48,733 bases of DNA, taken from Neoechinorhynchus agilis (Eukaryota > Animalia > Acanthocephala). Numbering within the stretch: the first letter of the stretch is position 1; each line of letters begins with the position of its first letter. Below the pieces are notes generated by a model. The model was given only the letters and a program-made list of their open reading frames with translations. It had not been told where the DNA came from and ran no database searches. Positions 2,098 through 35,828 of the stretch are shown piece after piece. A program made the translations under genes and the position numbers. The stretch covers positions 1-48,733 of the forward strand of contig JBMGUZ010000016.1 of the NCBI GenBank assembly GCA_051530055.1, given 5' to 3'.

Positions 2098-2139
2098 CGC
2101 AGGCCTAAAACGCAGAGGTAGGTCATATCCTGAGTTTGT

Positions 2140-3238: not shown

Positions 3239-3306
3239 CCGCCGTCAACGATGCCACCACCGCCGTCGACGATGCCACCAGTGCCGTCAACGATGCCACC
3301 AGTGCC
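3239..3306 (+). repeat. 21-nt tandem repeat (3.2 units) at the 5' end of the CRE-like element (mirror 45428-45495)
   Basis: Units ccgccgtcaacgatgccacca / ccgccgtcgacgatgccacca / gtgccgtcaacgatgccacca / gtgcc. Confidence 0.92.
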
Positions 3307-3365
3307 ATCCCCTTGCTGGCCCTCGCTCCGCTCGGGCCGAAATCGATAACCAAACAGACGACCTA

Positions 3366-12100: not shown

Positions 12101-12905
12101 TTATTTTAAATCGCACATTTCATTTTTAATTTTATTAATCGCTTCAAGACATCTTGTAGCCCTTTCAACATCACTTTCTTGCGATTGAGATAGATCCCGG
12201 ATTGTAGCAAGTGCGCAGATCTTAAGTTCCATTAATGTTTTACGACACTTCTGCGAACTTTCCTTTAGATCTTCTAATGCCTCATTTCGCTCAACCGTAG
12301 GACTCGACTTGTGGTCATTCATCAGTTGTTCAAAACGACTACGAGTTTGAGCAAGAAATTCTAAGAATAATTGGATTGCGACAAGCACACATAAAAACTG
12401 AAAATTTCTACTAACCTATCGTCTTCGCCGTCAACTGTTCAATTTCTCTAACCAGTTTTCTATTGCTCTCAAGTTGGTCTTTATGATGAGAGACTACGCA
12501 GTTTTGGCAGGCACTTCGATTGTAATGGAAGCATAAATCCAAGGCAGCATTTTCGCATGAATCACACTTCTTTGGAGATTGAATTTCAATCGGTTTTAAC
12601 TCGATCAAAGTAGCTGCACGATGATTGCGATATAAAACATCGCTTGGCTTTCCGTTCAGGTTAAATACTCTACGGCAACAAGGACACGATATCCGACGCT
12701 CGTTTTCTACAATTTTCTCAATGCATTGACAACAGAAGGTATGACAACAAGGAAGAGCACGCGGATCTTTAAACGTATCTAAACAGATTGGGCATGTTCG
12801 AAGATCCTCAAGTTGATCTTCGAGGAAAATCTTTAGGGGCCCAACGTCCTTAGGAGCAGGACTAATAACGCTAAATTTATTCGCCGTTGGTGTGTTTGGA
12901 TCCAT
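12101..12905 (-). CDS. TRIM/RBCC-like protein (RING, B-box, coiled coil), 2 exons (12416-12905, 12101-12360), 249 aa
   Basis: C3HC4 RING CPIC-x11-C-x-H-x2-C-x2-C...CPCC; B-box-like CDSC..CFHY..CQNC..H; helical C-terminus. The two track ORFs are joined in frame by a 55-nt GT-AG intron at 12361-12415. Confidence 0.85.
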
Positions 12906-15900
12906 TTATTGTTTTATCTAGAATCTCATATGCAAGACATCGCGTACGACAAACGGAGGATTCTAACTAAAATTCGAAGATTGATACAGGGGTATTCCAT
13001 GAATATATTGTAATTTAAAGAATAAATATTTTGACTTCGGGAAAATATATTTTATGTTAAAAAATAATTTAAACAATAGTTTTTTCCACTACTAAGTACT
13101 CCACAGGATCTGTCTCAAAATGTTCGGTAGTAGCTGTTTAAGTCTCTACTTATCATTCTCAATGTAAATTCAATGTTTTTTGTCTTAATGCCATGCGTTT
13201 AGTGTCAGAATATTCGGAGTATTTTCAAAAATGCTAACATCTAAGAAAATGCCCGGTTCTCTAAGGTTTGATATTTTATAAATAAAGCACATAATTGCCA
13301 AAAAATTCGAACATAAATTTGGAGTATTTAGTGCAACGGATGGTTGTATTTTTCAAAAGCAAATCCCAAAAAGTGAGTGAAGAGTGAATTGCAACTGGTG
13401 ATGAACCCGACGGGATTTGAAATGTATTTAATAAAAAATTATCTAACGGGTGAAGATCTAAATAGAACCTCCAGGGTTTCATTTAGCTTTTTATCCGAAA
13501 ATTTTCAAGAGAAATGTAATGCGAACGTTTTCGCGAAAAACGTACACCTAAGCAAACTGCAATCGGAATCTTTTTATGCAAGAAGATATTACCGGCAGTA
13601 ATACGAAAAATGGGGAATACGGAATGATCATTTGGAAAAACATTGAGCTTACGATAGCGTTATGTTTTGAAACAAAAACCCACGTGAATGATAACAACAT
13701 GCTTTCAAGCGCAATCTAAAATTATCCACTTTTATTTATGCACTAGCAATCCTCGCGCTGAGTCCTATTCGAGAACTTCAACAAGCTTCCGTTATTTGCA
13801 ATCCGTGATATTCATGTTCGTCGTCGAATAAAAATCTTCGACCGGTTCATTGCTTACGAGGTCTAAGAATTTATTTAGAGGAAGTTAAAATAAGCGATCT
13901 TCTTAAAGAAAGGCAACTGCACAAAGTCTGACCATTAAAATTAAAAATAGTACAGTTTTATACGATTATTGAGATTGGTAACTTCATATGAATTCTGATT
14001 CGTCGTAAAGATTTAGATATAAAATTAAAGGCGAATATACTCTTCCATTTATTAAATCTTTTGAATCGTTTGATATAAATGCATACGGCAGATAAATTCT
14101 GCGACCGTCATTTAGCTTTGTAGTCATTTTACTCTAATTCTTAAAATTCAATTGAGCAAAGAATATTAAATGCTCTTTAAGACAAGCAACCAGCTTAAGC
14201 GATCTGTGATTTAGGAATCGCAACGTTAGTGAGAAATTCAAGGCAGCTTATAATAATTGGGAAAAATCGGTTTTTTTCAAATGGTCGTTTATTTAAGACC
14301 ATTCGAATTCTTGGTCTCTTTTTCTTTGTATGTCCGTAAGAAGCAAATCAAGTGATTTCAATATTTCTGCCTTCCACGAAAACCAACTTCCCAGAAATGA
14401 ATCGTAAAAAAGTAGAAGTTCTTAAAACTTAATATTTTAACGGGGTTGATAACCATGGCAATTAATAAAATGCGTAACATATCATTTAGCCGCTTTCTTT
14501 AACTAAGATTAATCAATTTCAATTAAATTTATTTATTCTTAATAAATTTGGAAAAATGTCGACCAGGACTAATCGTTTAACGTTTTTAAGGATTAACAGC
14601 TTAATATTTTTAATTGGTAGGAACCTGTAAATTTCGTCCATAGCAAAAAAAATATTGATCTGGAAAGCGCAGAATTAATCTCCGTAAATGAGATATTCCC
14701 GATTTTGAACAATTTGAACAAACGTGCAAAAGCAGTTTAAAACAAAAAAAAACAAATCAGGTCAATTATCTGCGTTTTTTTACAAAACTATAAACATTTT
14801 CACGTTCTAATTAACATGAATATCTCTTCCAATATTACGATCAATAAAAGTGTTACAAACAAAGACGTCCAAACATAACACCAATAAATTTAACTCGATG
14901 ATATTAACAATGATAAGCATTAATTATTTTTATTGTTTACCTCGTCTTTAAAGGCTGAAAGCATTGTCGCATCAGAACATTTCTCACTAAAGGGACGGAT
15001 ATTATTGATGTTGCGACTTTATTCGCCTGTAGCTCACGGCGAAAGATTAATGTTCTAATTATTAAATTTCGCTGTGTTAATAGTGTAGAATGATGTCGAT
15101 GAAAACTAATTTGTAATTAATATTTGGACTTTGATTAAATCGTAGGTATGAATATTGGGATCGGAGTACATCAAAATTAGTCAATTCATCCACTTTCATT
15201 CCTAAAAATAATGAAATTAAGCTAATATTAAAGAAAACTTTGGATTTAGCTATCTATCTAGAGAAACCGATGCTTAATTTTTTACTCCGAATTCTTTAAA
15301 ATGAGTAAAATTGTTTGAATTAATTATCGACAAAACATAATTGCAATGCAATCGAAGTGAGTTTGAAAATTCAGTTTAGGATTTAACTTTTTGTTTTATT
15401 CTAACACTAAAAATGTTTTGACAATTATAATTGGGTTTTTAGCCCGCTAAATGCTCACAATTATCAATGTCCGTTTGGTTTGGATTTAAACAATTCTTAG
15501 TTGCAATAAACCAAAATCGCTCAAGAATGTAAATACGGCATTGTGTTTGTTTGTTTTATTCTAACCGAAAATAAAGTTTAAAATTTAAAGCGGCTTAGTA
15601 TACCTTAACGAATCTGGACTATACACATAAATTAATCTATAAAATCCAATCCTAATAATAAAAATCAGTAATAAAGTTCGTTGGCATTTTAAACCTTATA
15701 CGAAAATATCTTCTTATTAGTAGTGCTTTTCTTAAAGACAGATCCATTCAAAATCGATTTCGTGCCTTAAATAAATCTCAGATACAGGATCTTTTAGTTT
15801 AGCGAATGATTCCTGGATCCAAGGAGTTTTTAAAACACGCTGTTTAACTTCGTCCAGAGCAAAAATTTAGTTTAAGGTCTTTAGATAGGAATTCACTGTT

Positions 15901-16344
15901 GGTGATTGGTTGTGGTTCCATTCATTTGAAGAATGAAATACCTACGAACCAAAGAGAATTGCGAATTTACTGTTTGTGATTTGGCTAAAAATCAAACGTT
16001 AGATGATGTGAAGTCCTAAATTAAATGGATTACAATTGGACGGCTTAAATTTGTAGGATTTGTTCAGTGTGGATTATCGTCCACAGGAATGATGCGAGTG
16101 TTTCTTTAATTCGGAAGCGAGTTCTGTAGAACTGAACAAGGCATGGAAAAAATGTTTGTTTTAAAGTAGCTTTGTAAATATTCGATGATTTGTTCATCGA
16201 ATGCATCTTCCCTGGGCGGCTTTTTCAATTTTTTTATTATATTTAACACTTTTAGCCATTTCTTTGCTTATTATTCTTCAAAATCGTTACTAAAGAAATC
16301 AACACTTTGAATATCGACGTAACTCGATCGACGTTTCAAAAATT

Positions 16345-16630
16345 AAAAGTCCGTTTCTTTCGTTTTTTCACGTTTTCACTCAACGTCAAATCGAATGCGC
16401 ATCGTAATCCGAAAGTGGTTGCCGTTGTGCTCTTTTATGAATGATTTCGAGGAAATCGAGCATTTCGGCTTTCTCAACTTGATATGTAAATGTTTGTGGG
16501 GAAGATCTGGATTTGAATTTCTCACTTTAATTAGGAAGTTATCCACGCTTAGAATGAAATCGATACTTTAATTTTGCCATTTTGAAGATTTGCTGTAATA
16601 ATTAAAATGTTTGTATCTGGCGAAAATATT
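16345..16630. repeat. Dispersed repeat spanning the left arm/spacer boundary
   Basis: Identical to the right copy up to 16449, then partially similar, e.g. gatactttaattttgccattttgaagatttgctgtaataatt versus aatactttaatttgagcattttaaagatttgctgtaataatt. Confidence 0.8.
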
Positions 16631-17677: not shown

Positions 17678-19147
17678 TGATGTTACCACTTTAACTCGGA
17701 TGAAACGTTAAGAGTTCGTACATCTCTCCGGATCCTCAGATACCTCCAAGAGGTGGTACTCATCAGTGATTTTCTTCCCTTCAGCGGTATTTCGTCCCAC
17801 TTAATAATAACACGTTTTATTTGTGATTCACAAAGAGGTCCCATGTACCTTTATGTCCTCATTTGACGGATCCGGAATGGATGACGTATCCGGAGTGGAT
17901 CACCGAACCGTCTACCTCTTGCTGGATCTTGATCTCTTCGCAATTGGTTCGCAGATATCACTGCTTTTTTTATAGCTTTGTATAGTACCTGCAGCAATTC
18001 TTCGGATTTTTCTGCATCCCAGAAAAATTTCTTGGTTATCTCCAATTTTATAGCTCGATCCGACCCGGGTTTATCATTTTGCTCTTTCGAGTCCCACACG
18101 TCCGAGAAACTTTTCTGGCATCTCCGGGAACAAGCGGAGCAAGATGTGTCCAAGCGAGGTTATAGAAGTAAAGTTTGGATGTACCGCTTTTCCTTTATTA
18201 AAGACGGTGACTATTAATCGGAAATTTGCGACCCCGCGTTCTTCAATAACTTGCCGGCTCCAACGACATCTAATAGACTCATTTTGACTAATCTACGAAT
18301 GTCCCCTTCTTTGATACGCTTTATTGAATCATTTAATTCAGTCCAGCTGGTTCCGGTGAGTGCTGCCTGCATGTCATCTGTCTCTTTTTCGATGAGGTTG
18401 TTTCGTACATCAAGACGAAGCTTTGCTTTTCCGTTTACAGTCATAGTGCTCATTCTTGTTAGCTACTTTGAAGTTAATTAGACGGGATTTGTTGCCAAAA
18501 TTCTAACTTTTTTGCCCACCTTTTGCTTATCTGATTGCCTCAGAGAGCTTTCAATTAAGTCAACAACTTTGTGTATCTTCGGGGGGAGATAGAGAAGCGC
18601 ACATTTAACCGATGATGATCTCGTCATGTTGTAAAATTGAGGACTGATCACAGACCGGTTCAACAAATTCCTGAGAAAACCGTTAAATTTAGTTTCTCTG
18701 CTTCCCGTAGGATCTCTAGATAGCCTCGTGAGGCTGGCTCGGCTAATGACAAGTTTGGGCGGCACTTTCCTTTCAGCATGTTCCTAAGAAACTGTTACTC
18801 ATTGTTGATGGAATCCTTGTTGAAGCAATAGTTGTAGGTACGATCAAACAGCAAATCAATCCTAGCCATTTTATACTTAATTGGTGCAATTGTGAAGAAG
18901 GGGGCAATGTCAGTCGGCATACCATTTCTGCCAGAATTTCACACCCGGTAGGCTTGAAACATACTTGGCCTCCCAATCGCGCATGAACAATTCGGCGAGA
19001 TCTGGGGCAAGAGGACTCTTCATGGACAATCTATCAACTTGATGGTAGCTCTTACCTTCGAAACTGACATTCGTGCTGCTCCTGAACATGTGTATTGCGT
19101 TGAGGTATAGGAATCGCTGAGTCCAATGGCGCTTTTGTGAATAGATA

Positions 19148-22100
19148 CTACATCAGCAGGAGAAGAGTCTGAGGATGGAACCAAAAAATCAAGACTAGTG
19201 GGTTCACGATGTAATGCTTTAAACGGGGATGTGCCACGGGCTTTAACGGAAGCCTACCGGCGAGAACTCCCTTCTCACTTGCAGACAAATCAACCTTGTT
19301 GTTGTTCTTCATCATAATTCTCCCTCGAATATCCGGAGGATCTGGTGGTACCTTTTCCTTTGGTTTCGCTTTAGCGCAATTTTTGTTCCCAACTATATTA
19401 GCGCGCATGAACGAACCTTTGTTCGCGATGTGTGACAAGTGTTCAGCTGCATTTACGGCCATGTAACTAGTAAGATAACAATTAGGGTTTTTCGTTAGTC
19501 TAGAAGTTATCGCTGGTCCTTCGTCTGCTCTATTGGACCTCGGACCACCTCGGAGGACCAAAAGACCAAATTAATCTTTTATCCTGGTAGTATTACTTTC
19601 TTGACATTAACCTTTTCCTATCTTTATCCATTAAGAAATTACTTATTGTAAAAAAGTGTGTGCATCATTGAATTCCAATCGAATTGTGCGGGAGCATTGT
19701 GCGCTGAAGTTAAAGTTAGAACGAGAGGAAATAGAATACCTGTTCATTAGATATAAAGAACTTACCTTTATTAGAAAATGAAGGGACGAATAAGATTTTT
19801 CACAAAAATAAGCGTGAGAGGAAAGATAAAAGAGGCTCATAAGATTATAATTTGATAAAAGTTTCTGAAGCTTATTAAAACATCTAAAAAAGAAGGCAAA
19901 CCTAAGTTCAGGAGGGCGACCTCTCCCTAAAAAACAGATAGAGCCTCCTTTGAGAGTTTTTAGAACGGGTAATGTAATGTTAAAATTCAAATCAAGATAT
20001 TTGGCTCTATGAAGAAAATATTTGATTTTTAGAAAGGTATTATTAATCGAAGAATTAATTAAAAATCTAAATGTCTTGGAGGGGAAGTCGATTCCTAGAA
20101 CCCTGGTAAATTTCTTAATGTTGGAGGAGTTACAATTGTGGTATTTAATTAAATTATTGATTAAAACTTTAATAGAAGAGAGCGAGTTAGTGAGGGGAAT
20201 AAAAAGGTTTTATTGGAATTGATGGCTAGATTAGCCAATTTCAACTCTGAGCTAAGGGTACTCAGAGCTGCTTGAATGTTGCATAAAAGAGAGGGACAAG
20301 ACCTGGCCTTGCAGAAGAGAAAGATATCGTCTGCATATATAAGAGGAAAAATACCCCTGGGTAGTTTCAATTTCTTAAAGATAAAAATAAGGCAGATAAG
20401 GAAAAGAGTAGGGGATAGTGGAGAGCTTTGGGGGACCCCCAAACGGGAAAGGAATTTGGTTTTTGAGGGATCCACCTCATAATAAAAGCACTTTGATTCA
20501 AGTAAGTAATTATTTTTTTATAAGATTCAGAGGAATTTTTAGCTCCTCAAGAGCTTTGTATAAAAAGGTTCTATCCAAAGCATCAAATGCTTTGTTCAGG
20601 TCAAGCTGAATAAGAATTTTTTGAACAAATTTAATATTGTTCATACAGTTAAGGGTTTCAAGTAAAGTGTTAACGCCTTTACCTTTGATAAAACCATGGA
20701 AGTAAGAAGGAATAAGCTTCGTAGTTTCCAAAAACCTGTATAAAAGTCTATTTACGACTCTTTCTATGCAAGAGATTATAGGATTCTGAATTGAAATTAC
20801 TCTAATATGAGCCGGTTTTGAAATAATATCCTTGGTTTTCCGTAAAAAGACTTTCTTCACTATATTAATATGAAGAAGATCATCAAAATCTAGTTTTGTA
20901 AATTTTAATTTTGAAAAGAATAAAAATTTAATCTCTTCGTTAATAGCAGCGAAAATTTTCGGGGAGCAGCTCATTGAGTTATTAGACACGGAACCGTGAG
21001 ATCTGCACGATTCCAATAGAAAATTAATGTCTAAGTTCCAAGAGAATAATTTTTTAATAAAAATGGGAAGAGGAGGGGCTCACGTAAGCCGAGAATGTAT
21101 GCACATTTAAAATTTCCTCAATCACCTTGGGATAAGAAATTGAACCAATCCAATTGGCAGCTTTTGATCTCCAACAAGATGGTTTTTTGTTTAAAATGGT
21201 GGACCAAAAACCTTTGCCAAAAGGTTTGAGATTCATTAGGGTTTTCTTCTCCTGTTCAATCTGAAAGAGGAATTTTTCAGTGTAAAATTTCTTCATGAAG
21301 AAATCATGAAGAGTTTTGTTATTAAAAAGATTAGCAATGATTGCTTTTTTATAAAAAATATTTGCAGTCCTACATACAGGAGGACGCTTAATGTAAGATT
21401 GAGTGATAAGATGTTTCTTTACAGAAAGTAAAATGAGGTCGTTAAAGATGCTAAAAGAAATCAAGTTCCTTTTAGAGAACAAGGAACTAAGTTCATTATT
21501 AAAATTTCGTATAGATATGCCATTTAAAATAAAATCTCTAAGTGAGAGTCCGTTAGATTGAAATAAAATCATGTCCCAGGAGATACTGGACCTGTAATTG
21601 ATGAGAGGGATAAAATAAAAGTTCTTTTTAAAAATTGCACCATCCAAAAAGGAGTGCCTGTTTGAACTAAAGTTATGAAAAGATGGAAATTTAGGTAATA
21701 AAAAGTCTTCGGATTTAAAGAACGGTCTGAGGCCTGAGAAAAAATTAGTATTGAAGTCCCCAACTATAAAGTCGGGATGGTAAAAGAGTTAACTTTCTTG
21801 GGTTGAATATAAAGATTGCATATCGTTAAAAGTAGATTAGAGGGTGAGAAGGAGCCGTATAGAGGGTTTTTAATAGACACGATGTGTATCGCAAAGATCT
21901 CGTTCTTCTGAAAGCGCAGCTTGGGGGGCATACTTATCCAGGATAAAAAGTTGAAGTCCACCGGAAAATCCTATACTAGATGAGGGATTAGTAAAACGTG
22001 GAGATAAGAGAAAGCACTTATAGTTTGGATAATGGACCAGTTTCTTGAAAAAAGAGAAGATCCGTATAAGAAGAGTTTATACAGTCAAAAAGGTGAGTGG

Positions 22101-23377
22101 GGAGTTTATATGCTCTAGAGGCATTATATGTTATAAAAGAAAAATTTGAGTCAGGGGTCCAGAGAGGCTCTGCAATTATATTAAGATCTGTTACGTTTTG
22201 GATTTGATTCGTCCAATTCTCTAGAATATGGTGAGATTTGTCTTTTCGTAGAAGAGAAATTAAGCATTTCCCTAATTTTATTAAATGATGTATTTTCCTG
22301 TAAGGATAGTCCATTTGCAAGAGAAGCAAAATCCGGATTTGTCAGTCTCTCAACAATCCACGCAAGCATGGATTTTAAGAGAATTCGTTTTCAAAGTTTA
22401 AACTCCTTTGGGATGAGGAGTGGGATACAGTAATAGAGTCAGTAGGGAAGGGTGAAATGTCCTCCAAGGTACAATGCTGCACTTTCTTACGAACAGATTG
22501 TTTAGTGTTGCCAGCACTTTGAACTGGATGAGGATTGTAAGTAGCCCAGCCCTTACTATTCTCTGTATCCATGAAGGATTGTGTGAGACTTGCACTTCCT
22601 AGCAAAGGCTGGATGTCTCTTTCCACAATTTGCGCAGAGAGGATTATCCTGTGCCTTCCAGTCCTTTTTATGGTGGGAGCCATCGCAAAAGATGCATCTC
22701 GGCGAAGACTTGCAGCCTGATTCCGTATGTCCCCATACAGAGGATTTTTGGCATATAGTCAGGTTGAAGTCGTAAATTGACTCCTGATACCTGGAGAAGG
22801 TCACCCAGTATGACATGATAGCACGACCTGAGGAAGCCAATATGTCTGCAGTCTCCATCGGGGCAGAACAAAGAAGTGCATATGCTGAAACCGAATTTGG
22901 ACTGAATAGGTATTTTATCGGTTTCACACCTAATTCCTTCTCCACCAATCGAAAACCTTCTGCATCCAGTTCTTGAGGCGGATTAAACATCCTAATGGTC
23001 ACCCTTCTTGAAAGATCAACAAACGTAATATCCACGTCCTTCAACATTTTGAAAAATAAGTCCCTCCCTTCCGCATCGAAAAAGCAGAAGATAATATGAA
23101 ACTTGGCAGCGAATAACCTCTTGATGTTGAAATGCCTAAGAGACGCTTTGCCGCCAGGGACCAAATAACGTGAAAAATAGGTTCGTGTAAGCTCAGCAGG
23201 TGATCTGGTACCCAAAGCTTCCTTTTAGATCTTCACAACAAAATCATCCTTCAAGGTTGGACGTTTAATAGTGTTCGAAACTGGGGCACAATCATTCCTA
23301 ACTTCACAATCACACGTGGGGGAAATAACCACGTCCGAAACCAGAGGAAAACTTGAACCGGAAAGCGTAGTGACCAT
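19148..23377 (-). mobile_element. Element A: decayed two-ORF APE-RT non-LTR retrotransposon of a divergent family
   Basis: ORF1 with three degenerate CCHC knuckles. ORF2 fragments carry APE motifs FITYN..FQET (about 22040-22140), TICNLY and frameshifted GDFN, then RT motifs VISIQNP, HGFIKGK, LDLNKAFD, GVPQSSPLSP and YADD, and a possible C-terminal knuckle remnant PNC...EHLSH. Confidence 0.85.
22556..23377 (-). pseudogene. Element A ORF1 (gag-like, triple zinc knuckle)
   Basis: The ATG at 23377 is in frame with track ORF 22556-23215 across one TAA (23225-23227). Knuckles: ICQKSSVWGHTESGC, CIFCDGSHHKKDW, CANCGKRHPAFARKC. Confidence 0.8.
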
Positions 23378-23491
23378 ATCTTCCAATATACTAACCTTTC
23401 GGAGAAGATATAGGCTGCTTACTTGGCTGTTTCTTTGATTTTATCAGAGCGCAAAATTTAAACAAAAAATAGCGCACGGTTTTTTGAAATT

Positions 23492-23513
23492 TCGCAACAT
23501 GTTAGTGTTGCGA
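23492..23513. promoter_or_regulatory. 8-bp perfect inverted repeat (tcgcaaca-N6-tgttgcga) midway between the divergent elements A and B
   Basis: The palindrome is seen directly; a regulatory role is inference only. Confidence 0.25.
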
Positions 23514-23584
23514 CCAATATAGAAGGTTTTTATTCACACTATGTGCGAATGGAAAAATCAATAGTGGCACATTTTAGTGAATAA

Positions 23585-25801
23585 TCAATATCACCACAAT
23601 CATCCCGTTGGAACTGTGGGGGTGCGACCAACCTTTTTAAGCTCACTCGATATTTACCAGGAATATCCATAGCTCTCATTCAAGAGTCAAAAAGCGTTTT
23701 TAATTTAGAGCAACTATATGTTCATCTACCCCTTTTAAAGTCTTCGGTTTTTACATCTTTCGTTCATCCTCCCTATGAACTTGCCACACAAGGCCTTATT
23801 TCAATTTTTCAATCTTCCCTTGTTCCCTCACTGATCATGTCCTATTCCTCTGAGGAATTGTCTTACAGTATTTTTAAAATACTTTTCAAAAAGAACTATC
23901 TCTCCCTTGCGAATATTTACACAAGACTAGGTCTCATTCATCGTTCGCATGTAAAAGACAAAATCAAATGGCTCTTAGGGGCTAACATCGATCTCATTGT
24001 GGGAGATTTTAATGATCCATCCTTGAAATGGTCTCGGGCCATTGTTAACGCTGTCAATCTTTCCCATTCTCTTATCATGCCTAACAATCCTTCCTTTCAC
24101 AATATTTCTACTAACAAACACTCCTTTTTGGATCTAGTAATATTGAAGAAAATTTTAAACCTTTCAATCGAATATGATCGCCAAGTATCTAATTTTGTCC
24201 TCTTAGGACACGGCATCTTGATTTGGTCCATTGATCCCTTTGACAGGCTGCGCAAAGTGTATCACTTATCCCCTTTAAATTTAGCGTTTTTTCGGCTAGT
24301 TTGCGAGAAAATTTTCTTACACTTAGGTTCTGATTGCAAGTTGTCGGATATTTTACCTTTAGCAAACTCCTTAGTTAATAAAGGCGCTAATTCTTCCTTA
24401 TGTCACACCGTTAAAACCTTCTCTCGCCCTTATGTGAGCCGATCACTTCGTTTTCTTGGACGCCAACTCTATGTAGCCCAACGCTCTGGGGATACCATTC
24501 TATGCAAAACCCTATCAAGCCTTCTATGGGCTGAACGTTGCCGACAGCGACAACGAAGGGATGCATTATTTCTTGCTACACTCAAACCTTACTCTTCAAA
24601 CTGGTGGCGTACCTTTTCTAATAAGGGTAAAGTACCTTGGATATCAAAAATTACGGCTTGGTTAAAATCCTCGACTTTGGAGGATATTCTTACTCAAACT
24701 TTTGACTTCCATTCCGCAGGCTCCTCGACCAACGTGCCGTCAGTTTGTTTTCGTAAACTAATACGTAATCGTACTGATATCTCATTAAATGACATTCTCG
24801 AAGTTTGGTCCACAAATCCGAAATTGGGTTCGGCTAACGGCTACCCCGGGACGAAAATTTTCACCTTGCTTCGTAGGGACTGCATAATCCTCCTTGCAAA
24901 GGCTATGCTATGCTGTTCGCCATACGTGTGGAGGGATATCAATGTTCTTAGACGCATTTTCTTGGTCAAAAATGGCAGGAAGGCTATTGTTGAACCAAAG
25001 GATGTTCGTCCAATCTCGCTTCAAAATCCTCTAGTTAGCATATATGAACGCGCCCTTGCAAATAGGTTGAGATCTTTCATTAATAAACATAATTGCATCT
25101 CTCGGAACTGTCATGGCTTTCTAAAAGGGAAATCAGTTCATTCTGCCCTTGCAGAGATTTACTCCAATTTTTCCTGCTCTAACCAGCCCATGCGAGCCAT
25201 TCTTGTCTTGGACATTTCTCAAGCTTTTGATAAGATTTCTCTTTCTTTTATTATTGAAATGCTTGAATTTTTCAGTCTACCTCACAATTTAATAACACGT
25301 ATCCACAATATTTTATTTACAAAATCTTTTTACTACGAAGACGACGCCTCAAAGACACTTTACTACCCGTCCAATGGTGTTCCACAGGGGTCGCCTCTGT
25401 CACCTATTCTTTTCCTTATGGCATCACAATACTTGATTCAGAATTTTAAAGTTCGAGCCTCGCTCACCTGCTACGCGGATGATTTTACTTTTGTCATCTC
25501 CACCCACAGAGTAGCTAGAATGAAGCTCCTGATTGAGCAATGTATTGATTTTCTTAACTCCTTTTTACCTAAAATGAACTTATCGTTGAATAAGTCGAAA
25601 TGTTTGTGCATTTTTAAAGTTCGCTCAAGCAGAATTAGGAAAGATTTAAAATCCTTTTTCAAAAATTTAATGAACAACCCTGATACCTCTTCTTCAGGTT
25701 TTAGGAATACACCCCTTAAAATTAAAATATTGGGTCACGCCTTTACTGCTAATCTCTCGCCTAGATTAGATTTGAATAAAATGAAAAAATGCTCACTTTA
25801 G
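23585..25801 (+). CDS. Element B APE endonuclease-reverse transcriptase frame (738 codons open; first ATG at 23837 gives 654 aa)
   Basis: Manual translation upstream of 23837 stays open to a TAA at 23582 and contains APE motifs WNCGG (23609) and IALIQES (about 23669-23689). Downstream motifs: VGDFN, FLDLV, RPISLQNP, HGFLKGKS, LDISQAFD, GVPQGSPLSP, YADD. Confidence 0.88.
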   Translation, partial: SISPQSSRWNCGGATNLFKLTRYLPGISIALIQESKSVFNLEQLYVHLPLLKSSVFTSFVHPPYELATQGLISIFQSSLVPSLIMSYSSEELSYSIFKILFKKNYLSLANIYTRLGLIHRSHVKDKIKWLLGANIDLIVGDFNDPSLKWSRAIVNAVNLSHSLIMPNNPSFHNISTNKHSFLDLVILKKILNLSIEYDRQVSNFVLLGHGILIWSIDPFDRLRKVYHLSPLNLAFFRLVCEKIFLHLGSDCKLSDILPLANSLVNKGANSSLCHTVKTFSRPYVSRSLRFLGRQLYVAQRSGDTILCKTLSSLLWAERCRQRQRRDALFLATLKPYSSNWWRTFSNKGKVPWISKITAWLKSSTLEDILTQTFDFHSAGSSTNVPSVCFRKLIRNRTDISLNDILEVWSTNPKLGSANGYPGTKIFTLLRRDCIILLAKAMLCCSPYVWRDINVLRRIFLVKNGRKAIVEPKDVRPISLQNPLVSIYERALANRLRSFINKHNCISRNCHGFLKGKSVHSALAEIYSNFSCSNQPMRAILVLDISQAFDKISLSFIIEMLEFFSLPHNLITRIHNILFTKSFYYEDDASKTLYYPSNGVPQGSPLSPILFLMASQYLIQNFKVRASLTCYADDFTFVISTHRVARMKLLIEQCIDFLNSFLPKMNLSLNKSKCLCIFKVRSSRIRKDLKSFFKNLMNNPDTSSSGFRNTPLKIKILGHAFTANLSPRLDLNKMKKCSL

Positions 25802-26100
25802 CATCGAAAAAGACGAAGCGCGCCGTTACTCTCGGGTTAAACGCTAATCAATGCCAAACTATTTACAAAAGCTAGAGCATTCCTGGCCTGGTATTTTTTT
25901 CTCGAGGTCGCCCCGGAACAAAAGGCTTTAATCATCAAAACGTTCTGCGATAACCTTAATACCCTGTCTTTCTCCTGGGCCGGAGAATTGAGGATCTTCT
26001 GCAACAGTAGACTTATGAGATGGTCTAGTTGAACGATACTGATTAGTTTCTTGTTTTTGGTTTTTCCTCTCATACTGCTACATGATGAATAAATCTGTAT
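23585..26100 (+). mobile_element. Element B: ORF1-less APE-RT non-LTR unit, same family as element A, opposite orientation
   Basis: After a frameshift in the A-run near 25785 the thumb continues (MLTLASKKTKRAVTLGLNANQCQTIYKS*...SRGRP). AATAAA lies at about 26089. Confidence 0.75.
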
Positions 26101-26226
26101 TATTTTAGTTTTCGCGCCGGTAATCTCAAATCAGATGAAATTCTCGCCTAAAAATTTGTTTCTTAAATATCGCTGTAGGTTCAACGAATCCATATCTTTT
26201 GTGCAGCCATCGAACAGAAAGAGAAA

Positions 26227-27444
26227 TCAGCATTGCCTTCTGTATACGCCCACGGCGCATACAAATCGTAAGGAACTTCTTGGTTTGTTCGATGCGTTGG
26301 ACGCGTTCTCTCGCTCGTGTTCGCTTAGAGACCGCGGCACGGGGGGCGGGGGGCCGTTCGAAAAGTTGACCGAACTGGACGGATTTCGGTTCATATCTCC
26401 CGCTCTGTGTAGTGGCGAATTCAACATCGCTACCGGATCAATCACCCACATCTTCAGTCGCTCAATCGGCGGATAATTTGTCCTTAACACTTTTGGCTCC
26501 AGCCCTGTCAGACATTTCTCTAAGATCGGAGCTTTATTTAATTTCCGACGATATCATCATCTAGCTGGAAAAGGTCGAAATGGTTAATTTATAAATAACG
26601 CTATATTCCATAAGAAGAACAATTGACATAAAACAGTAAGAAATTTAATCATGAAGAGGCACCGCTGAAGATGGATTTTCAAAGTCCCGTCCAAACTCGT
26701 ACACAAAACGAAGTTCATAAGGTATTCAAACTGCTATTTCTCGAACATTCTTCTCATAGATCGATTCAGTTAAACCTTGTTATATTCGGTAGCTTTTGCT
26801 CACATTTTTCGACTTTTCCGCTTCAGCTTTATTGAGGAATGCGAAATACGTGTAGAATGAATACTTGAGGTTTCAGGACCACTACCTCCAGAATCAGCAA
26901 CTGCATCACTTGCTTCCTCGGTCACCATATTATCACAAATGAGGTCGTCGAAATCGAATTGATCAATGCCTACATCGATATCTACGATTTCACTAATTTT
27001 TTTTGCGTGATTGGATTCAAAAGCGGTATTAAGTCATTCGGATTCTTGGTAATGTCCTCCATATGATGTTTCAACTGAATAATTATGTATAAGCAGGTCA
27101 CTTGATTTCTGATATCTTCCAAATAACATATTTTGGTCGCCGAAAATGAACAACAGCGATATCATGGCAATTCTGGGAGCAAACGTTGATCGATCAATCT
27201 TAAGGTTTATTTTATCTGTATTAAGAGCCAAATACGTTTTCGTTTTATTTCGCTGCTTATATCGCTGGCGTGCAACGGGTTCTTCTACCTGAGCAGGAAT
27301 GATTTCTAACAGGTCTTCGCAAATCGATTGAATGGTATCATATCCCAAACTCTGAATAGTCTTCACAGGAGCGGTCTTTGTTCCCCTCCAGGTAGAAAAT
27401 ATTATATTGCAGATATTTCGAAAGGGAAAGCCTCGCCTCTTCAA
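26227..27444 (-). pseudogene. Decayed coding-like block of unknown family
   Basis: Several long frames broken by isolated stops (27034-27444, an acidic stretch IDQFDFDDLICDNMVTEE near 26890-27030, and 26227-26490). No recognisable domain. Confidence 0.3.
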
Positions 27445-27501: not shown

Positions 27502-27648
27502 TTTTTGGGTGATAAGAAAAATAAAGATTGATTTGTCAATATTTCGTCCGTTTCGTCGGACTTCTTAGGGGCAAGCAACCTGAAAAAGTCGGACGAGACG
27601 GATTTTGGAAATTAATAAATCAATCTCTATTTTTCTTATCACCAAAAA
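27502..27648. mobile_element. MITE-like foldback element (147 bp)
   Basis: About 32-bp near-perfect terminal inverted repeats (tttttgggtgataagaaaaataaagattgattt / aaatcaatctctatttttcttatcaccaaaaa) plus an inner 16-bp imperfect inverted pair. A half copy lies at 2033-2097. Confidence 0.72.
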
Positions 27649-28309: not shown

Positions 28310-28635
28310 TCTCAAACGCGCTTAGTGCAATATGAAGCGACCAGCTTCTATCAGGAGTTCGGCGGGGATTGTGGCATTTGTCCAATATAGACATAGTCAC
28401 AGTCTTTGCAGGATACTGAGTAGACCACGCAATAATTTCCCTTGAGTTGCTCCTGCATCGACTTGACATGCTCTTTCACATCGTCGATTACAACCTAACG
28501 AATGCAATGTGAAGCGACCAGCCTCTATCAGGAGTTCGGCGGAGATTGTGGCATTCGTCCAATATAGACATAGTCACAGTCCTTGCAGGGTACAGAGTGG
28601 ACCACGCAATCATTGCCCTTAAGTTGCTCCGGCTT
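28310..28635 (-). mobile_element. Two tandem (period about 177 bp) Penelope-like GIY-YIG fragments
   Basis: They translate to CVVYSVSCKDCDYVYIGQ and CVVHSVPCKDCDYVYIGR, and the nucleotide copies are clearly similar. Confidence 0.82.
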
Positions 28636-28643
28636 TGACTTAA

Positions 28644-28791
28644 AATACTTTTGATCAAAATTATAATAAAAACAACATTGAAGATTCCATATTTTAATAA
28701 AAAACATGAAAATAATGCAAAAATCACGGATGGAAATATAAACACGGAAGAATTTGATAAAAAGAACGAATCCGAATTTTAATGACAAAAA
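28644..28791 (+). repeat. 148-bp direct repeat, left copy (candidate long target-site duplication)
   Basis: Hand alignment to 30230-30377 gives about 17 differences (roughly 88% identity). Confidence 0.85.
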
Positions 28792-30229
28792 CGCCGCTAG
28801 TCAAACTGAGATCCTCAACAGCTTTTCGCAGCTAGCACCTAACATCGAAATAATTTCGCGTGCTCAACTGTCTCTTCTGGGTAGTTGCGTTTTTGATGAA
28901 AATATACCTCAGGAGATCCTCCAAATAGCGGCGAGAGTCGAATTGCTCTGCGAGCGTACGAAGGAACTTCCATCCCATCAGGCATTATTTTTAATAAAGA
29001 GTGCCCTGTTCCTTCCGAAGTTGCTGTACAAGTTGCGTACAGCGCCCTTCTTAAAACATCAACACGACGAAAATTGATGATAATTTAAGGAGGTGTCTCG
29101 AAGGGATTATAAGTATCCAACTGTCGGATGCCGCATGGAGACAAGCTTCCTTGCCTGTATCTCCGGCGGTTTGGGTATTCGTAAAACAGCCGATGTTGCG
29201 ATTCCGGCCTTTTTAGGTTCCTATGAGAGCAGCCGAAAGTTGGTAGCTAAATTGCTCGAAAAAGAGTTTTTACTTGATGAAAATTTTAAAGAGGCGGTCT
29301 TCGAATTTTGCCGCATTACGCAGTGCGATGAGGTTACTTTGAGGGGCAAGAGACAGTCAGTTTGGGATAAACCTTTAATCACGCGAGTTCACAACTCAAT
29401 GCTTTCTGACGCGCGTGATGAGGTGACCCGAGCTCGATAGTTGGCGGTCTCCTCGAAGGAATCCGGTGCCTGGCTGAACGCCGTTCCGATTCCCTCGATC
29501 GTAAATTTACTCACATACGAAACAGTAAGGATCGGAGTGTCCTTACGACTGGGAATCCCGATTTGTGTCCCATAGTACTGTCGTTGTGGGGCCCTTGTGG
29601 ATTCTTTGGGTAGACACGGTCTCGTCTGTCGCCAGTCCGGTGGCAGGTATGCTCGCCACGCTGAGATTAACTCGGTTATTAGTCGGGCCTTAAACACGAT
29701 ACACGCACCGAATCTGCTCGAACCGAGTCACCTCTGCAGACTCGACGGTCGAAGACCGGATGGGGTAACTGTGTTCCCGTGGCGAGAAGGGAAATCTCTT
29801 CTCTGGGACGCTACTTGTGTGGACACCCTTGCTCTGTCCAATCTAAGACATTCCTCAAGGCGCGAAGGAGGTGCCGCAATTGCCGCAGAGGAACGCAAGC
29901 GCGGGAAGTACGCGGAGCTCTTGAGGGCACATCACTTCGTCCTTTCGGCGTTGAGACGCTCGGTGCCTTCGGTGCTGAGGCCAAGAACTTTAGGGCGGAT
30001 CTTTCAAGGAAGATGAGGATCGCAACCGGAGACCCAAGAGCAGGAACGTACTTCCTGCAAAACATAGGTCTCGCGATCCAGCGCGGCAACGCTGCAAGTG
30101 TCCTTGCGACAGTTTCGAGTGGTAAAGAGATGGATCTGGGAGGCTCGTAGATACATGAGACTTGATTTGCTGTGAGCTTAGTTTTTGTATGAATTAAATC
30201 TGTCTACTTCAAAAAAATAAAATAACTAG
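28792..30229 (+). mobile_element. 5'-truncated, decayed RLE-type (CRE-like) non-LTR element, second subfamily
   Basis: Fragments LSLLGSCV, ALFLIKSALFLPKLLYKLRTAP, GGLGIRKTADVAIPAFL, RHAEINSVI, RRPDGVTVFPWREGKSLLWDATCVDTLA, FGVETLGAFG, QRGNAASV; A-rich tail at 30210-30225. Confidence 0.88.
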
Positions 30230-30377
30230 AATACTTTTGAGCAAAATTATAGTAAAAACAACACTAAAAATTCCAGATTTTTATTAAAAACATGAAAATA
30301 ATGCAAAAAATCATTGATGAAAAATAAACACGGAAGAATTTGACAAAAAGAACGAATCCCGATTTTACTGACAAAAA
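30230..30377 (+). repeat. 148-bp direct repeat, right copy
   Basis: Begins a few bases after the element's A-rich tail; see the left copy. Confidence 0.85.
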
Positions 30378-30404
30378 ATAAGAGGCGAGCCAACGTATCT
30401 GTCA

Positions 30405-30570
30405 CAAGCTGAGACCGAAATCCGGAGAAGGAGTGAATGGTCCACGGAGTCGAAAGCTTTCGACAAATCCAGTTGAATGCGACGGGTGACGTGGGAGGAA
30501 TTATTGTCCAGGTTGCGTAGGAGCGTGTCATAAATGCAAAGTGGGGCATCCGTTACAGAAAATTTGGGCA
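30405..30570 (-). mobile_element. LINE RT fragment, diverged paralogue of the arm LINE (about 8261-8418)
   Basis: Contains IQLDLSKAFDSVDHSLLL; the nucleotide run ggagaaggagtgaatggtccacggagt...cataaatgcaaagt...cagaaaatttgggc is shared with 8261-8418. Confidence 0.8.
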
Positions 30571-31339
30571 AAGAATATAAAGATTATTTTCCAGAGTCTT
30601 TTCTACACAAGAAGAGTTTATATACATTCCAGCAACCACTCTGGATCACTCAGCTACTATCGTCGAAAGGACGGATGCAGCGTTCCCCTTGCAAAGCCGG
30701 ACTTATGTTTGGCCGAAGAAATTATCCTGTCTTCGGATCGTCAGTGAATTCGTCTGAGTCTTTTAGACATTTGTTTGACCAGGTCCTGCGTCGCTGTGCC
30801 GGGCGACCCGAGCGTCGCAACGGCAAAGAAAACGAAGTAATGATTTCGACCCAGGTCCCATTATTTTGTCTTTTTGCGATCCTCTTTCTAGCAACGCAAT
30901 AGCTTTTGGAGGGCACTTTTGTGACCGAAGGAGGATAATTCTTTTGTTATTTCAACTTGGTTACTTCCTTCCTGATCTCGAGGATAAGAGATCAGCAATT
31001 TATCGAATCAGGAGCGGGGGTAACACAGGGAATGGTACACGTTATCAAGGAAGCTGATTCCTAAGAAATTCTCAGGCGTCATATGCTTTCTTAAAGGCGA
31101 AAATTGGTTGTGAGGCTCGGTTTTCGTTTAATCTTAAAGGGAGTTCTGAAGATGAAACTCGAGGAATTATAGTGTTTTTAAATTTACTCTATTGCAAATA
31201 ATAAAAACCATTACCGAAATGGCGTTTTAAAGTTATCGAAAGTTTATTTATAAACCTGTGCTTCCATGGTTCTTAAGTCTCGGATATAAAAAGAGTTCTA
31301 CACAATACCAATGTTTTCTGGTTGATGGTGGTTCCGCTA

Positions 31340-32099: not shown

Positions 32100-32390
32100 A
32101 ACTCAGAGAACTTTGCTATTTAAATTATTACAGCAAATCTTTAAAATGCTCAAATTAAAGTATTGACTTCATCCTTAATTAGGAGTTGATATCTGTTCAG
32201 TAGCAGTGGGATATTAAAATCCAAATTTGCATTAAAAACATTGACTTACATCTCAAGTTTAGAAAGCCGAAACGCTCGATTTTCCGAAATCATTCATAAA
32301 AGAGCACAACGGCAACCACTTTCGGATTACGATGCGCATTCGATTTGACGTTGAGTGAAAACGTGAAAAAACGAAAGAAACGGACTTTTA
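32100..32390. repeat. Dispersed repeat (inverted) spanning the spacer/right arm boundary
   Basis: Reverse complement of 32117-32284 aligns with mismatches and small indels to 16450-16610. Confidence 0.8.
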
Positions 32391-35300
32391 ATTTTTGAAA
32401 CGTCGATCGAGTTACGTCGATATTCAAAGTGTTGATTTCTTTAGTAACGATTTTGAAGAATAATAAGCAAAGAAATGGCTAAAAGTGTTAAATATAATAA
32501 AAAAATTGAAAAAGCCGCCCAGGGAAGATGCATTCGATGAACAAATCATCGAATATTTACAAAGCTACTTTAAAACAAACATTTTTTCCATGCCTTGTTC
32601 AGTTCTACAGAACTCGCTTCCGAATTAAAGAAACACTCGCATCATTCCTGTGGACGATAATCCACACTGAACAAATCCTACAAATTTAAGCCGTCCAATT
32701 GTAATCCATTTAATTTAGGACTTCACATCATCTAACGTTTGATTTTTAGCCAAATCACAAACAGTAAATTCGCAATTCTCTTTGGTTCGTAGGTATTTCA
32801 TTCTTCAAATGAATGGAACCACAACCAATCACCAACAGTGAATTCCTATCTAAAGACCTTAAACTAAATTTTTGCTCTGGACGAAGTTAAACAGCGTGTT
32901 TTAAAAACTCCTTGGATCCAGGAATCATTCGCTAAACTAAAAGATCCTGTATCTGAGATTTATTTAAGGCACGAAATCGATTTTGAATGGATCTGTCTTT
33001 AAGAAAAGCACTACTAATAAGAAGATATTTTCGTATAAGGTTTAAAATGCCAACGAACTTTATTACTGATTTTTATTATTAGGATTGGATTTTATAGATT
33101 AATTTATGTGTATAGTCCAGATTCGTTAAGGTATACTAAGCCGCTTTAAATTTTAAACTTTATTTTCGGTTAGAATAAAACAAACAAACACAATGCCGTA
33201 TTTACATTCTTGAGCGATTTTGGTTTATTGCAACTAAGAATTGTTTAAATCCAAACCAAACGGACATTGATAATTGTGAGCATTTAGCGGGCTAAAAACC
33301 CAATTATAATTGTCAAAACATTTTTAGTGTTAGAATAAAACAAAAAGTTAAATCCTAAACTGAATTTTCAAACTCACTTCGATTGCATTGCAATTATGTT
33401 TTGTCGATAATTAATTCAAACAATTTTACTCATTTTAAAGAATTCGGAGTAAAAAATTAAGCATCGGTTTCTCTAGATAGATAGCTAAATCCAAAGTTTT
33501 CTTTAATATTAGCTTAATTTCATTATTTTTAGGAATGAAAGTGGATGAATTGACTAATTTTGATGTACTCCGATCCCAATATTCATACCTACGATTTAAT
33601 CAAAGTCCAAATATTAATTACAAATTAGTTTTCATCGACATCATTCTACACTATTAACACAGCGAAATTTAATAATTAGAACATTAATCTTTCGCCGTGA
33701 GCTACAGGCGAATAAAGTCGCAACATCAATAATATCCGTCCCTTTAGTGAGAAATGTTCTGATGCGACAATGCTTTCAGCCTTTAAAGACGAGGTAAACA
33801 ATAAAAATAATTAATGCTTATCATTGTTAATATCATCGAGTTAAATTTATTGGTGTTATGTTTGGACGTCTTTGTTTGTAACACTTTTATTGATCGTAAT
33901 ATTGGAAGAGATATTCATGTTAATTAGAACGTGAAAATGTTTATAGTTTTGTAAAAAAACGCAGATAATTGACCTGATTTGTTTTTTTTTGTTTTAAACT
34001 GCTTTTGCACGTTTGTTCAAATTGTTCAAAATCGGGAATATCTCATTTACGGAGATTAATTCTGCGCTTTCCAGATCAATATTTTTTTTGCTATGGACGA
34101 AATTTACAGGTTCCTACCAATTAAAAATATTAAGCTGTTAATCCTTAAAAACGTTAAACGATTAGTCCTGGTCGACATTTTTCCAAATTTATTAAGAATA
34201 AATAAATTTAATTGAAATTGATTAATCTTAGTTAAAGAAAGCGGCTAAATGATATGTTACGCATTTTATTAATTGCCATGGTTATCAACCCCGTTAAAAT
34301 ATTAAGTTTTAAGAACTTCTACTTTTTTACGATTCATTTCTGGGAAGTTGGTTTTCGTGGAAGGCAGAAATATTGAAATCACTTGATTTGCTTCTTACGG
34401 ACATACAAAGAAAAAGAGACCAAGAATTCGAATGGTCTTAAATAAACGACCATTTGAAAAAAACCGATTTTTCCCAATTATTATAAGCTGCCTTGAATTT
34501 CTCACTAACGTTGCGATTCCTAAATCACAGATCGCTTAAGCTGGTTGCTTGTCTTAAAGAGCATTTAATATTCTTTGCTCAATTGAATTTTAAGAATTAG
34601 AGTAAAATGACTACAAAGCTAAATGACGGTCGCAGAATTTATCTGCCGTATGCATTTATATCAAACGATTCAAAAGATTTAATAAATGGAAGAGTATATT
34701 CGCCTTTAATTTTATATCTAAATCTTTACGACGAATCAGAATTCATATGAAGTTACCAATCTCAATAATCGTATAAAACTGTACTATTTTTAATTTTAAT
34801 GGTCAGACTTTGTGCAGTTGCCTTTCTTTAAGAAGATCGCTTATTTTAACTTCCTCTAAATAAATTCTTAGACCTCGTAAGCAATGAACCGGTCGAAGAT
34901 TTTTATTCGACGACGAACATGAATATCACGGATTGCAAATAACGGAAGCTTGTTGAAGTTCTCGAATAGGACTCAGCGCGAGGATTGCTAGTGCATAAAT
35001 AAAAGTGGATAATTTTAGATTGCGCTTGAAAGCATGTTGTTATCATTCACGTGGGTTTTTGTTTCAAAACATAACGCTATCGTAAGCTCAATGTTTTTCC
35101 AAATGATCATTCCGTATTCCCCATTTTTCGTATTACTGCCGGTAATATCTTCTTGCATAAAAAGATTCCGATTGCAGTTTGCTTAGGTGTACGTTTTTCG
35201 CGAAAACGTTCGCATTACATTTCTCTTGAAAATTTTCGGATAAAAAGCTAAATGAAACCCTGGAGGTTCTATTTAGATCTTCACCCGTTAGATAATTTTT

Positions 35301-35828
35301 TATTAAATACATTTCAAATCCCGTCGGGTTCATCACCAGTTGCAATTCACTCTTCACTCACTTTTTGGGATTTGCTTTTGAAAAATACAACCATCCGTTG
35401 CACTAAATACTCCAAATTTATGTTCGAATTTTTTGGCAATTATGTGCTTTATTTATAAAATATCAAACCTTAGAGAACCGGGCATTTTCTTAGATGTTAG
35501 CATTTTTGAAAATACTCCGAATATTCTGACACTAAACGCATGGCATTAAGACAAAAAACATTGAATTTACATTGAGAATGATAAGTAGAGACTTAAACAG
35601 CTACTACCGAACATTTTGAGACAGATCCTGTGGAGTACTTAGTAGTGGAAAAAACTATTGTTTAAATTATTTTTTAACATAAAATATATTTTCCCGAAGT
35701 CAAAATATTTATTCTTTAAATTACAATATATTCATGGAATACCCCTGTATCAATCTTCGAATTTTAGTTAGAATCCTCCGTTTGTCGTACGCGATGTCTT
35801 GCATATGAGATTCTAGATAAAACAATAA

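Follow-up and report, generated by a model that had tools for sequence, protein, structure and literature searches.

Do two retrotransposon-like units that lie head to head in the genome of the acanthocephalan Neoechinorhynchus agilis form one bidirectional element, or did they become neighbours by chance? The units, element A on the minus strand and element B on the plus strand, occupy part of a 48,733-nt stretch (GenBank assembly GCA_051530055.1, contig JBMGUZ010000016.1, positions 1 to 48,733; hereafter the window), with their 5' ends toward each other and 207 bp in between. The original prediction from this DNA had proposed a bidirectional composite with a shared promoter, with chance adjacent insertion as its fallback. 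We find the fallback to be the best reading, with a probability of about 0.8. On this reading, A and B are two independent, inactive insertions of long interspersed nuclear elements (LINEs), adjacent in opposite orientation in repeat-rich Neoechinorhynchus DNA, and the locus holds two LINE copies side by side and no bidirectional composite element.

To define the two units, we combined the open reading frame (ORF) listing with three-frame translation. Element A contains an ORF1 followed by an ORF2 with an apurinic/apyrimidinic endonuclease (APE) and a reverse transcriptase (RT), and element B contains APE-RT only. This agrees with the predicted divergent pair of one ORF1 and two ORF2s (Table 1). 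The ORF1 ATG of A (23377-23375) is the first ATG downstream of stops located about 20 codons upstream. The frame carries an in-frame stop at 23227-23225 and its zinc knuckles at 22753-22592, of which knuckles 1 and 2 are degenerate, and terminates at 22556. It matches the ORF1 of a related unit, L002, with a blastp E of 1e-9. In A, 457 nt separate the third CCHC knuckle from the first APE motif, compared to approximately 455-490 nt in complete relatives. Taken together, the ORF1 homology and this canonical distance indicate that A is a decayed copy of the complete architecture.

The APE motifs of A are traceable as FITYNAS (22137), LLFFQET (22059), VGDFNTN (21764, GDFN) and SFHN..FLD (21683), followed by a Trp-rich linker at 21230-21150. 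The reading frame changes at least twice in this segment, which also contains several stops. The RT was detected by Pfam RVT_1 in two parts (20510-21016, E 1.1e-8; 20161-20475, E 3.2e-12), with the motifs ISIQNPIISCIER at 20797-20759 (ISIQN), HGFIKGKG at 20698-20675 and IYADD at 20340-20326. Along ORF2, the motif frames run from 0 to 2, 1, 0 and 1, which requires at least four frameshifts in addition to several stops. The predicted element had extended to 19148. We found no homology to the LINE lineage in 19148-19640, and A probably ends near 19756, a tentative position based on a 7-bp candidate target-site duplication (TSD) that is at chance level and would set the end 11 nt past the AATAAA. 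No poly(A) or microsatellite tail follows this signal; decay may have removed it.

Element B is far better preserved. Its long frame contains the APE motifs RWNCGG (23606-23623), LIQESK (23675, QES) and VGDFNDP (23999, GDFND), a Trp-rich linker (24581-24661), and the RT motifs ISLQN (25013), HGFLKGKS (25112), CYADD (25469, YADD) and ILGHAF (25727). The RT matches Pfam RVT_1 with an E of 2.4e-33. The endonuclease match (Exo_endo_phos_2, E 0.015) falls under the Pfam cut-off, and the C-terminal HD pair is replaced by HG in B. The frame has no ATG before 23837, and an ATA at 23588 lies at about the position of the ATG of relatives. As predicted, B lacks ORF1 and begins beside the first APE motif. 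This had been regarded as a suspiciously precise point for a truncation. It turns out to be the natural start of ORF2 in the lineage, 3-13 residues before the first APE motif: the proteins and gene models P0004, P0005, P0020 and P0155 start 8-13 residues before WN(C/S), and the ORF2 of a copy in locus L001 (L001a) starts ATG TTG CAA TGG (M-L-Q-W), 3 residues before the WN motif.

Comparison with relatives allowed the ORF2 path of B to be followed past its long frame. The path exits the frame near an A6 run at about 25795 and returns near T7/C4 runs at 25893-25920. It continues through SRGRPG (25900-25917) to a natural stop, TGA at 26030-26032, giving approximately 815 codons, as in relatives, and this terminal region matches AISGLVFFSRGRPPEQR.. 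of the relatives. The post-RT RGRP that had been listed as shared by the two elements is therefore present in both, but in B it is situated outside the long open frame, past two frameshifts and a TGG-to-TAG change. All three ORF2 lesions of B lie within 130 nt (25795-25920) of the 2.4-kb ORF2, two of them at homopolymer runs. These two frameshifts may be long-read assembly errors, in which case the only defects of B would be one nonsense codon and the missing ATG. A candidate TSD of 8 bp, tentative at P ~0.08 by shuffling, would bound a 2,523-bp insertion that starts 9 nt before the likely ORF2 start and ends 8 nt past the AATAAA. No poly(A) or microsatellite tail follows the AATAAA of B. An exact-product look-up of the 654-aa ORF of B found no gene on record.

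The two elements were predicted to be clear but distant relatives, and the comparison bears this out. In tblastn, A and B share 25-35% identity over the APE, linker and RT (E 4.6e-25 and 2e-11), and their motifs are collinear with spacing differences below 90 nt. The shared motifs that had been singled out, which are indeed unusual relative to textbook LINEs, were all found, namely the two Trp-rich linkers, ISxQNP..ER, HGFxKGK and RGRP. No similarity was detected between the 5' and 3' non-coding parts of A and B (tblastx, blastn). The presence of a LINE-type RT together with an N-terminal APE-like endonuclease classifies A and B, at the sequence level, as APE-type non-long-terminal-repeat retrotransposons. 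They appear to represent two separate families within one acanthocephalan lineage: their RTs align at only 33% identity and are not sisters in a neighbour-joining tree. The nearest relatives of the B RT are L006 9021-9636 (62.6%, RT alignment) and L007 17117-19089 (62% over the RT part, tblastn), and the best matches of the A RT reach 34-36% identity (RT alignment). Close nucleotide copies of A or B were absent from the related acanthocephalan loci that we fetched, a sample of about 170 kb rather than the whole genome.

Both sense strands had been described as pyrimidine-rich. We measured approximately 55-56% pyrimidine in each, compared to 50% for the window (A: T 34%, C 21%, A 29%, G 15%; B: T 33.5%, C 23%, A 27%, G 16.5%). 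A G-poor, T-rich sense strand is found in most sampled relatives; L002 is C-rich instead. The flip in strand composition at the locus thus follows from a compositional habit of the lineage displayed in opposite orientations.

The history of the two elements also differs. A carries at least four frameshifts and several stops in ORF2 as well as the stop in ORF1, whereas B retains 738 clean codons with three lesions near the end. This indicates different insertion times. Direct repeats flanking the A+B pair were no better than those in shuffled controls, which leaves the pair without a bracketing TSD above chance. Two 9-mer candidates, AAAAATCAA and CCATATCTT, were likewise rejected as being at chance level. 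The ~200-bp 5' region that A and B had been proposed to share is a spacer with no similarity to the rest of the window or to any sampled locus, and a junction-region profile search for hidden ORF1/ORF2 remnants returned nothing significant in it. The spacer probably contains the short 5' untranslated region (UTR) of A, older target DNA and the initial 6 nt of B. Should both candidate TSDs prove real, older target DNA between two separate insertions would account for about 160 bp of it. The spacer also contains a hairpin at 23492-23513 with a perfect 8-bp stem and a 6-nt loop (TCGCAACA / TGTTGCGA), a structure that, by a rough estimate, a 207-bp segment would seldom contain by chance; otherwise, only small repeats are present.

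To obtain an orientation background, we scored adjacent lineage fragments in the sampled N. agilis loci L001 and L004-L008. The 14 pairs comprised 3 head-to-head, 4 tail-to-tail and 7 tandem arrangements, often spaced by less than 1 kb. These counts match the 1:1:2 ratio, indicating that head-to-head pairs occur at the rate expected from random orientation. The original prediction had suggested looking for the same divergent A/B arrangement elsewhere; none was found in L001 or L004-L009, within the ~170 kb sampled.

These data are consistent with the following scheme. As shown by relatives, the lineage unit comprises an ORF1 (RRM-like part and three CCHC knuckles), an ORF2 of ~820 aa (APE, Trp-rich linker, RT and short thumb) and a 3' UTR with an AATAAA. 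From what is known of LINEs, the overlap of the ORF1 stop with the ORF2 ATG in L002 suggests that the two ORFs are translationally coupled, and copying would proceed by target-primed reverse transcription. A would be an old copy of complete architecture, now thoroughly broken. B would be a younger, ORF2-only copy that starts within ~30 nt of the ORF2 start and has lost ORF1, promoter and start codon, either through 5' truncation at insertion or as a recurrent ORF2-only form. Neither would be able to move alone, and the 207-bp spacer would be a remnant of 5' UTR and target DNA rather than a promoter used by both.

Several points weigh against two independent insertions as the full account. The orientation sample is small and biased, as the loci were found via gene models of the same lineage. 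The element ends are not firm, given the P of ~0.08 for the B TSD, the chance level of the A TSD and the missing poly(A). With no close nucleotide copies of A or B in the sample, the element ends are those of single copies and the pairings counted are those of the sampled loci. The 5' end of B near the ORF2 start is mirrored in the L001 copies L001a and L001b, in which similarity is lost ~12 nt before the W codon, and no ORF1 is detectable in L004b and one L008 copy either. Random truncation may thus not be the whole explanation for B.

We weighed other ways in which the pair might have arisen. That A and B constitute one composite retroelement, bidirectionally transcribed from a spacer promoter and moving as a unit, is extremely improbable. 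The 5' ends do face each other across a short AT-rich spacer and both halves come from the same lineage, but their RT identity is only 33%, closer relatives of B are found elsewhere and the two halves have decayed very differently. Moreover, no TSD surrounds the pair, the spacer is unique in the sampled data, the arrangement does not recur and head-to-head neighbours are no more frequent than random orientation predicts. Target-primed reverse transcription cannot copy a divergent pair from one RNA. Could both arms instead stem from a single event, in which each DNA end of a staggered break primed a different LINE RNA, as in a variant of twin priming, and the cDNAs were joined at their 5' ends? 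The geometry, with 3' ends outward and 5' ends meeting, would fit, and L001 contains two further head-to-head junctions with B-like 5' ends (9009/9714 and 13503/13863). However, classical twin priming joins non-overlapping parts of one RNA, whereas both arms here extend from APE to thumb at 33% RT identity. The pair is not bracketed by a TSD, ~160 bp of unrelated sequence separates the candidate ends, and the far greater decay of A would be unexpected unless its template was already dead. We consider such an event very improbable. Nested insertion, of B into the 5' UTR of A or of A into the ORF1 of B, is somewhat less remote and still improbable. Clustering and nesting of LINE fragments is frequent in the sampled loci; in L007, for example, a B-like copy is interrupted at aa 48 by an RT element. 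The younger age of B would also suit its arrival second. Yet nothing to the right of B can be linked to A, and the 9-bp repeat that would fit (CCATATCTT, 23374 / 26190) is at chance level. No ORF1-like sequence was found to the left of A by tblastn with ORF1 queries, even though ORF1 of five other subfamilies was recovered with the same query. We therefore rejected insertion of A into an ORF1 of B. Nor did tblastn detect any other ORF1-like sequence in the central loop of the window, the only other window matches being in its inverted-repeat arms (described below).

A different possibility concerns B itself. B may be complete for its kind, representing an ORF2-only subfamily or regular form of ~2.5-2.8 kb whose 5' terminus falls on the ORF1/ORF2 junction; the adjacency to A would still be due to chance. 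Such a form could arise by an internal transcription start, or by stalling of the RT at a junction RNA structure that serves translational coupling. L001a and L001b are 88.6% identical, with similarity starting only ~12 nt before the W codon and unrelated sequence upstream. B, L001a, L001b, L004b and an L008 copy keep the ORF2 start without a detectable ORF1, as against six other copies that have ORF1. In addition, contig L003 spans from 99 nt before the ORF2 ATG to ~200 nt past the stop, the candidate TSD of B would delimit a unit that begins just ahead of the likely ORF2 start, and the ORF2 of B is almost intact. On the other hand, the sample is very small, and the gene models through which its loci were found begin at ORF2. 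L001a and L001b are inverted relative to each other at a distance of 3.7 kb and perhaps did not insert independently. The C-termini of ORF1 are of low complexity and diverge fast, such that short remnants could escape detection. Further, the resolved 5' ends differ (-12 vs -30 nt) and complete ORF1+ORF2 units exist in several subfamilies. We regard it as possible but unlikely that B is a complete unit of such a kind. Preferential formation of ORF2-only copies in the lineage is likewise doubtful, and the pattern is equally possible as a sampling artefact. The broader proposal that the lineage is a deep, undescribed Jockey/R1 branch that regularly makes ORF2-only units, with the nearly intact and perhaps TSD-flanked B among them, is similarly tentative. 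If it were true, the lineage would have an ORF1-independent form or a programmed reverse-transcription stop at a translational-coupling site.

We also characterized the lineage to which A and B belong. An exhaustive HMMER search with B against 1.84 billion representative proteins gave 24,030 RT matches, only 9 of them at E<1e-30. The named entries among these 9 are hypothetical proteins of N. agilis and Pomphorhynchus laevis, and the remainder are ENA or Logan contigs. Full-length HMMER alignments of B were obtained with P0004 (E 1.5e-57) and P0005 (E 2.6e-55). Word-indexed protein searches with the whole of B, the A1 profile and the N-terminal half of B returned only P0007 and a few weak LINE matches. 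We aligned B with eleven relatives to extract motif signatures. The W-rich linker, (D/S)(L/V)RPISIQNxLVSIYEKALA, HGF/HGY and FFSRGRPPEQR are specific to the acanthocephalan set in this alignment. As the motifs shared by A and B occur throughout the lineage, they are signatures of the lineage and not of the A/B pair.

The lineage ORF2 measures ~815-828 aa (P0004, 828 aa; P0155, 818 aa). P0004 and P0155 end ~50 aa past the thumb motif RGRPPEQR and contain no further Pfam domain, that is, no RNase H and no C-terminal Cys-His motif. The endonuclease motifs WN.., QE(T/S), GDFND and S.LD are conserved and collinear across A, B and the relatives. P0155 matches Pfam Exo_endo_phos at E 5e-5 with 23.5 bits, just below the 24.5-bit cut-off. 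Among solved structures, the family profile matches human LINE-1 ORF2p best (8c8j, E 1.2e-10), followed by R2. In L002, ORF1 is at least 408 aa long and its stop overlaps the ORF2 ATG by 8 nt (ATGAGTGA). The three knuckles of this ORF1 follow the patterns CX2CX4HX4C, CX2CX3HX4C and CX2CX3HX6C (Pfam zf-CCHC, E 3.3e-5). Units in which ORF1 precedes ORF2 were found in L002, L001c, L005, L006, L007 and, in P. laevis, L009. The lineage is dispersed and multi-copy, with at least 20 fragments, many of them truncated, in the ~170 kb sampled from N. agilis and P. laevis.

The lineage resembles Jockey/R1-type LINEs in its architecture and may belong to that group. The original prediction had raised the possibility of an undescribed lineage, which stands in part. 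We found no dedicated description in the literature, but the architecture is of Jockey/R1 type and acanthocephalan LINEs have already been reported as abundant and jockey-like (PMC7310846, PMC7943196). LINEs make up ~36% of the P. laevis genome (PMC7310846) and ~52% of its transposable element content (PMC7943196), and P. laevis repeat transcripts received the BLAST annotation 'mobile element jockey' (PMC7310846). Our results establish the unit organization and the diagnostic motifs of one LINE lineage in these LINE-rich genomes, the copies of which appear in public annotation only as 'hypothetical proteins'. It also raises the question of whether ORF2-only copies of the lineage arise at a preferred point. 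An answer would aid repeat annotation in parasite genomes and inform on ORF1/ORF2 coupling in Jockey-type elements.

Judged by architecture and published description, the closest described element appears to be Hebe, a Jockey-clade LINE of the bdelloid rotifer Adineta vaga (Gladyshev & Arkhipova 2010, PMC2861651). The hosts of Hebe and of the acanthocephalan lineage both belong to the phylum-level group Syndermata. Hebe has a 485-aa ORF1 with three knuckles, an 896-aa ORF2 with APE and RT, and a poly(A) 11 bp past its AATAAA (PMC2861651). The acanthocephalan lineage resembles it in having two ORFs, a gag-like ORF1 with three CCHC knuckles, an ORF2 with APE then RT and neither RNase H nor a C-terminal Cys motif, and an AATAAA close to the 3' end. 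It differs in its shorter ORF2 (~815-828 aa vs 896 aa), in the lack of a visible poly(A) tail at A or B, and in the frequency of 5'-truncated or ORF1-less copies, which Hebe reportedly lacks. A second comparison is with the R1/Jockey/I-group LINEs of arthropods. The best matches beyond the Acanthocephala are arthropod proteins (Artemia, Cordylochernes, Loxostege, Trichogramma and Bacillus rossius), two of which have UniRef names of R1 type. Their RTs show 24-29% identity in the RT alignment and 27-31% over the stretches matched by HMMER, a level that is usual between clades. Unlike R1, the A/B locus gives no evidence of site specificity. Ostertag and Kazazian reportedly described twin-priming inversions of L1 in 2001. 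The A/B pair resembles such inversions in that two LINE segments lie head to head with 3' ends outward. In L1, part of a single element is inverted, whereas the A and B arms represent two families, each with a whole ORF2 and with no common TSD.

Table 1 Coordinates of elements A and B and of the sequence between and around them (positions in the window)
Feature	Position	Strand	Basis or remark
A post-RT (thumb) and ORF2 C-terminal region	19643..20137	-	GRGRPPE at 19927-19907, aligns with FFSRGRPPEQR of relatives
Probable A 3' end	19756..19772	-	Sole AATAAA at 19772-19767, end ~11 nt further
A RT domain, split across two reading frames	20161..21016	-	Pfam RVT_1; tblastn to B, P0155 and P0004
A APE endonuclease and Trp-rich linker	21054..22143	-	Motifs, tblastn
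Decayed ORF1 C-terminal and inter-ORF segment of A	22144..22555	-	
A ORF1, gag-like, RRM-like part and three CCHC-type knuckles	22556..23377	-	Homology to L002 ORF1
Spacer, A ORF1 ATG to B open frame, 207 bp, AT-rich	23378..23584	.	
Candidate B TSD, left copy ATTTTAGT	23571..23578	.	Exact 8-mer shared with right copy
B ORF2 uninterrupted frame, 738 codons	23585..25801	+	Stop-free; APE, Trp-rich linker, RT
B thumb and C-terminus	25802..26032	+	Readable via two frameshifts and TGG->TAG at 25873-25875
B 3' UTR	26033..26101	+	Sole AATAAA at 26088-26093, end probably 8 nt further
Candidate B TSD, right copy ATTTTAGT	26102..26109	.	

The N. agilis assembly comprises 46.2 Mb in 102 contigs, three of which carry 94% of the sequence (PMC12690905). 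The window itself is a giant inverted repeat. Positions 1-16449 and 32285-48733, its two arms, match at every one of 16,449 bp (100% identity) and extend exactly to the window ends. The boundary zones (16450-16608 and 32118-32284) show ~160 bp of lower identity with indels, and they flank a 15.5-kb unique loop that holds A and B. The arm/loop boundary lies inside a dispersed repeat, another copy of which is at 2149-2323. Either the inverted repeat is a genuine duplication that was recently homogenised, or the assembler used a single repeat node twice.

The arms contain further mobile DNA. Another RT element is located at 3366-5902 (+), with its mirror at 42832-45368 (-). It has ORFs at 3366-4559 and 4572-5582, a match to RVT_1 (E 6e-9) and no detected APE. 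Its nucleotide sequence is 90% identical to that of an element at 19097-20632 of N. agilis L007, which there splits a B-like LINE at residue 48; a search past this element did not recover the lost 5' portion of the split copy. More broadly, the window shares dispersed repeats with N. agilis loci at 80-97% nucleotide identity, including 4178-5665 with L007 at 90%. An ORF1-like (RRM/CCHC) remnant at 9567-10492 (-), mirrored at 38242-39167 (+), matches L002 ORF1 at E ~1e-7 with no ORF2 after it, and probably derives from the same or a related LINE lineage, as judged from this similarity. The neighbouring segment 8001-9000 has a strong G-over-C skew (+0.46). A dispersed repeat of ~200-240 bp with 81-85% identity, possibly a SINE-like (short interspersed nuclear element-like) or other non-autonomous element, occurs at window positions 8188-8418, 30374-30571 and 40316-40546 and at L005 17107-17350.

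Among the sampled loci, L001 contains two B-like 5' ends (9706-9836, +, and 13511-13381, -; 88.6%) that face inward around 3.5 kb with three annotated genes (RRM, fibrillarin and Cnd2-like). The L001b copy ends after residue 49. A 380-bp piece of the window at 27004-27381 (-) is 95-98% identical to part of the condensin-subunit-2-like gene of N. agilis L001 (12349-12845), apart from a 115-bp indel. The indel lacks splice-site ends on either strand, and we therefore rejected a LINE-made processed retrocopy; the piece is a duplicated gene fragment. An Rfam scan of the window gave no matches. An intact 164-aa ORF at 12411-12905 (-), mirrored at 35829-36323 (+), encodes a RING finger (zf-RING_UBOX, E 2e-9) followed by a Cys/His-rich part and is TRIM-like; an exact-product look-up found no gene on record for it. 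Finally, the segments 1694-1930, 27503-27648, 28326-28791 and 30227-30377 contain two hairpin inverted repeats resembling miniature inverted-repeat transposable elements (87% and 77% complementarity) and local ~150-bp repeats with ~88% identity.

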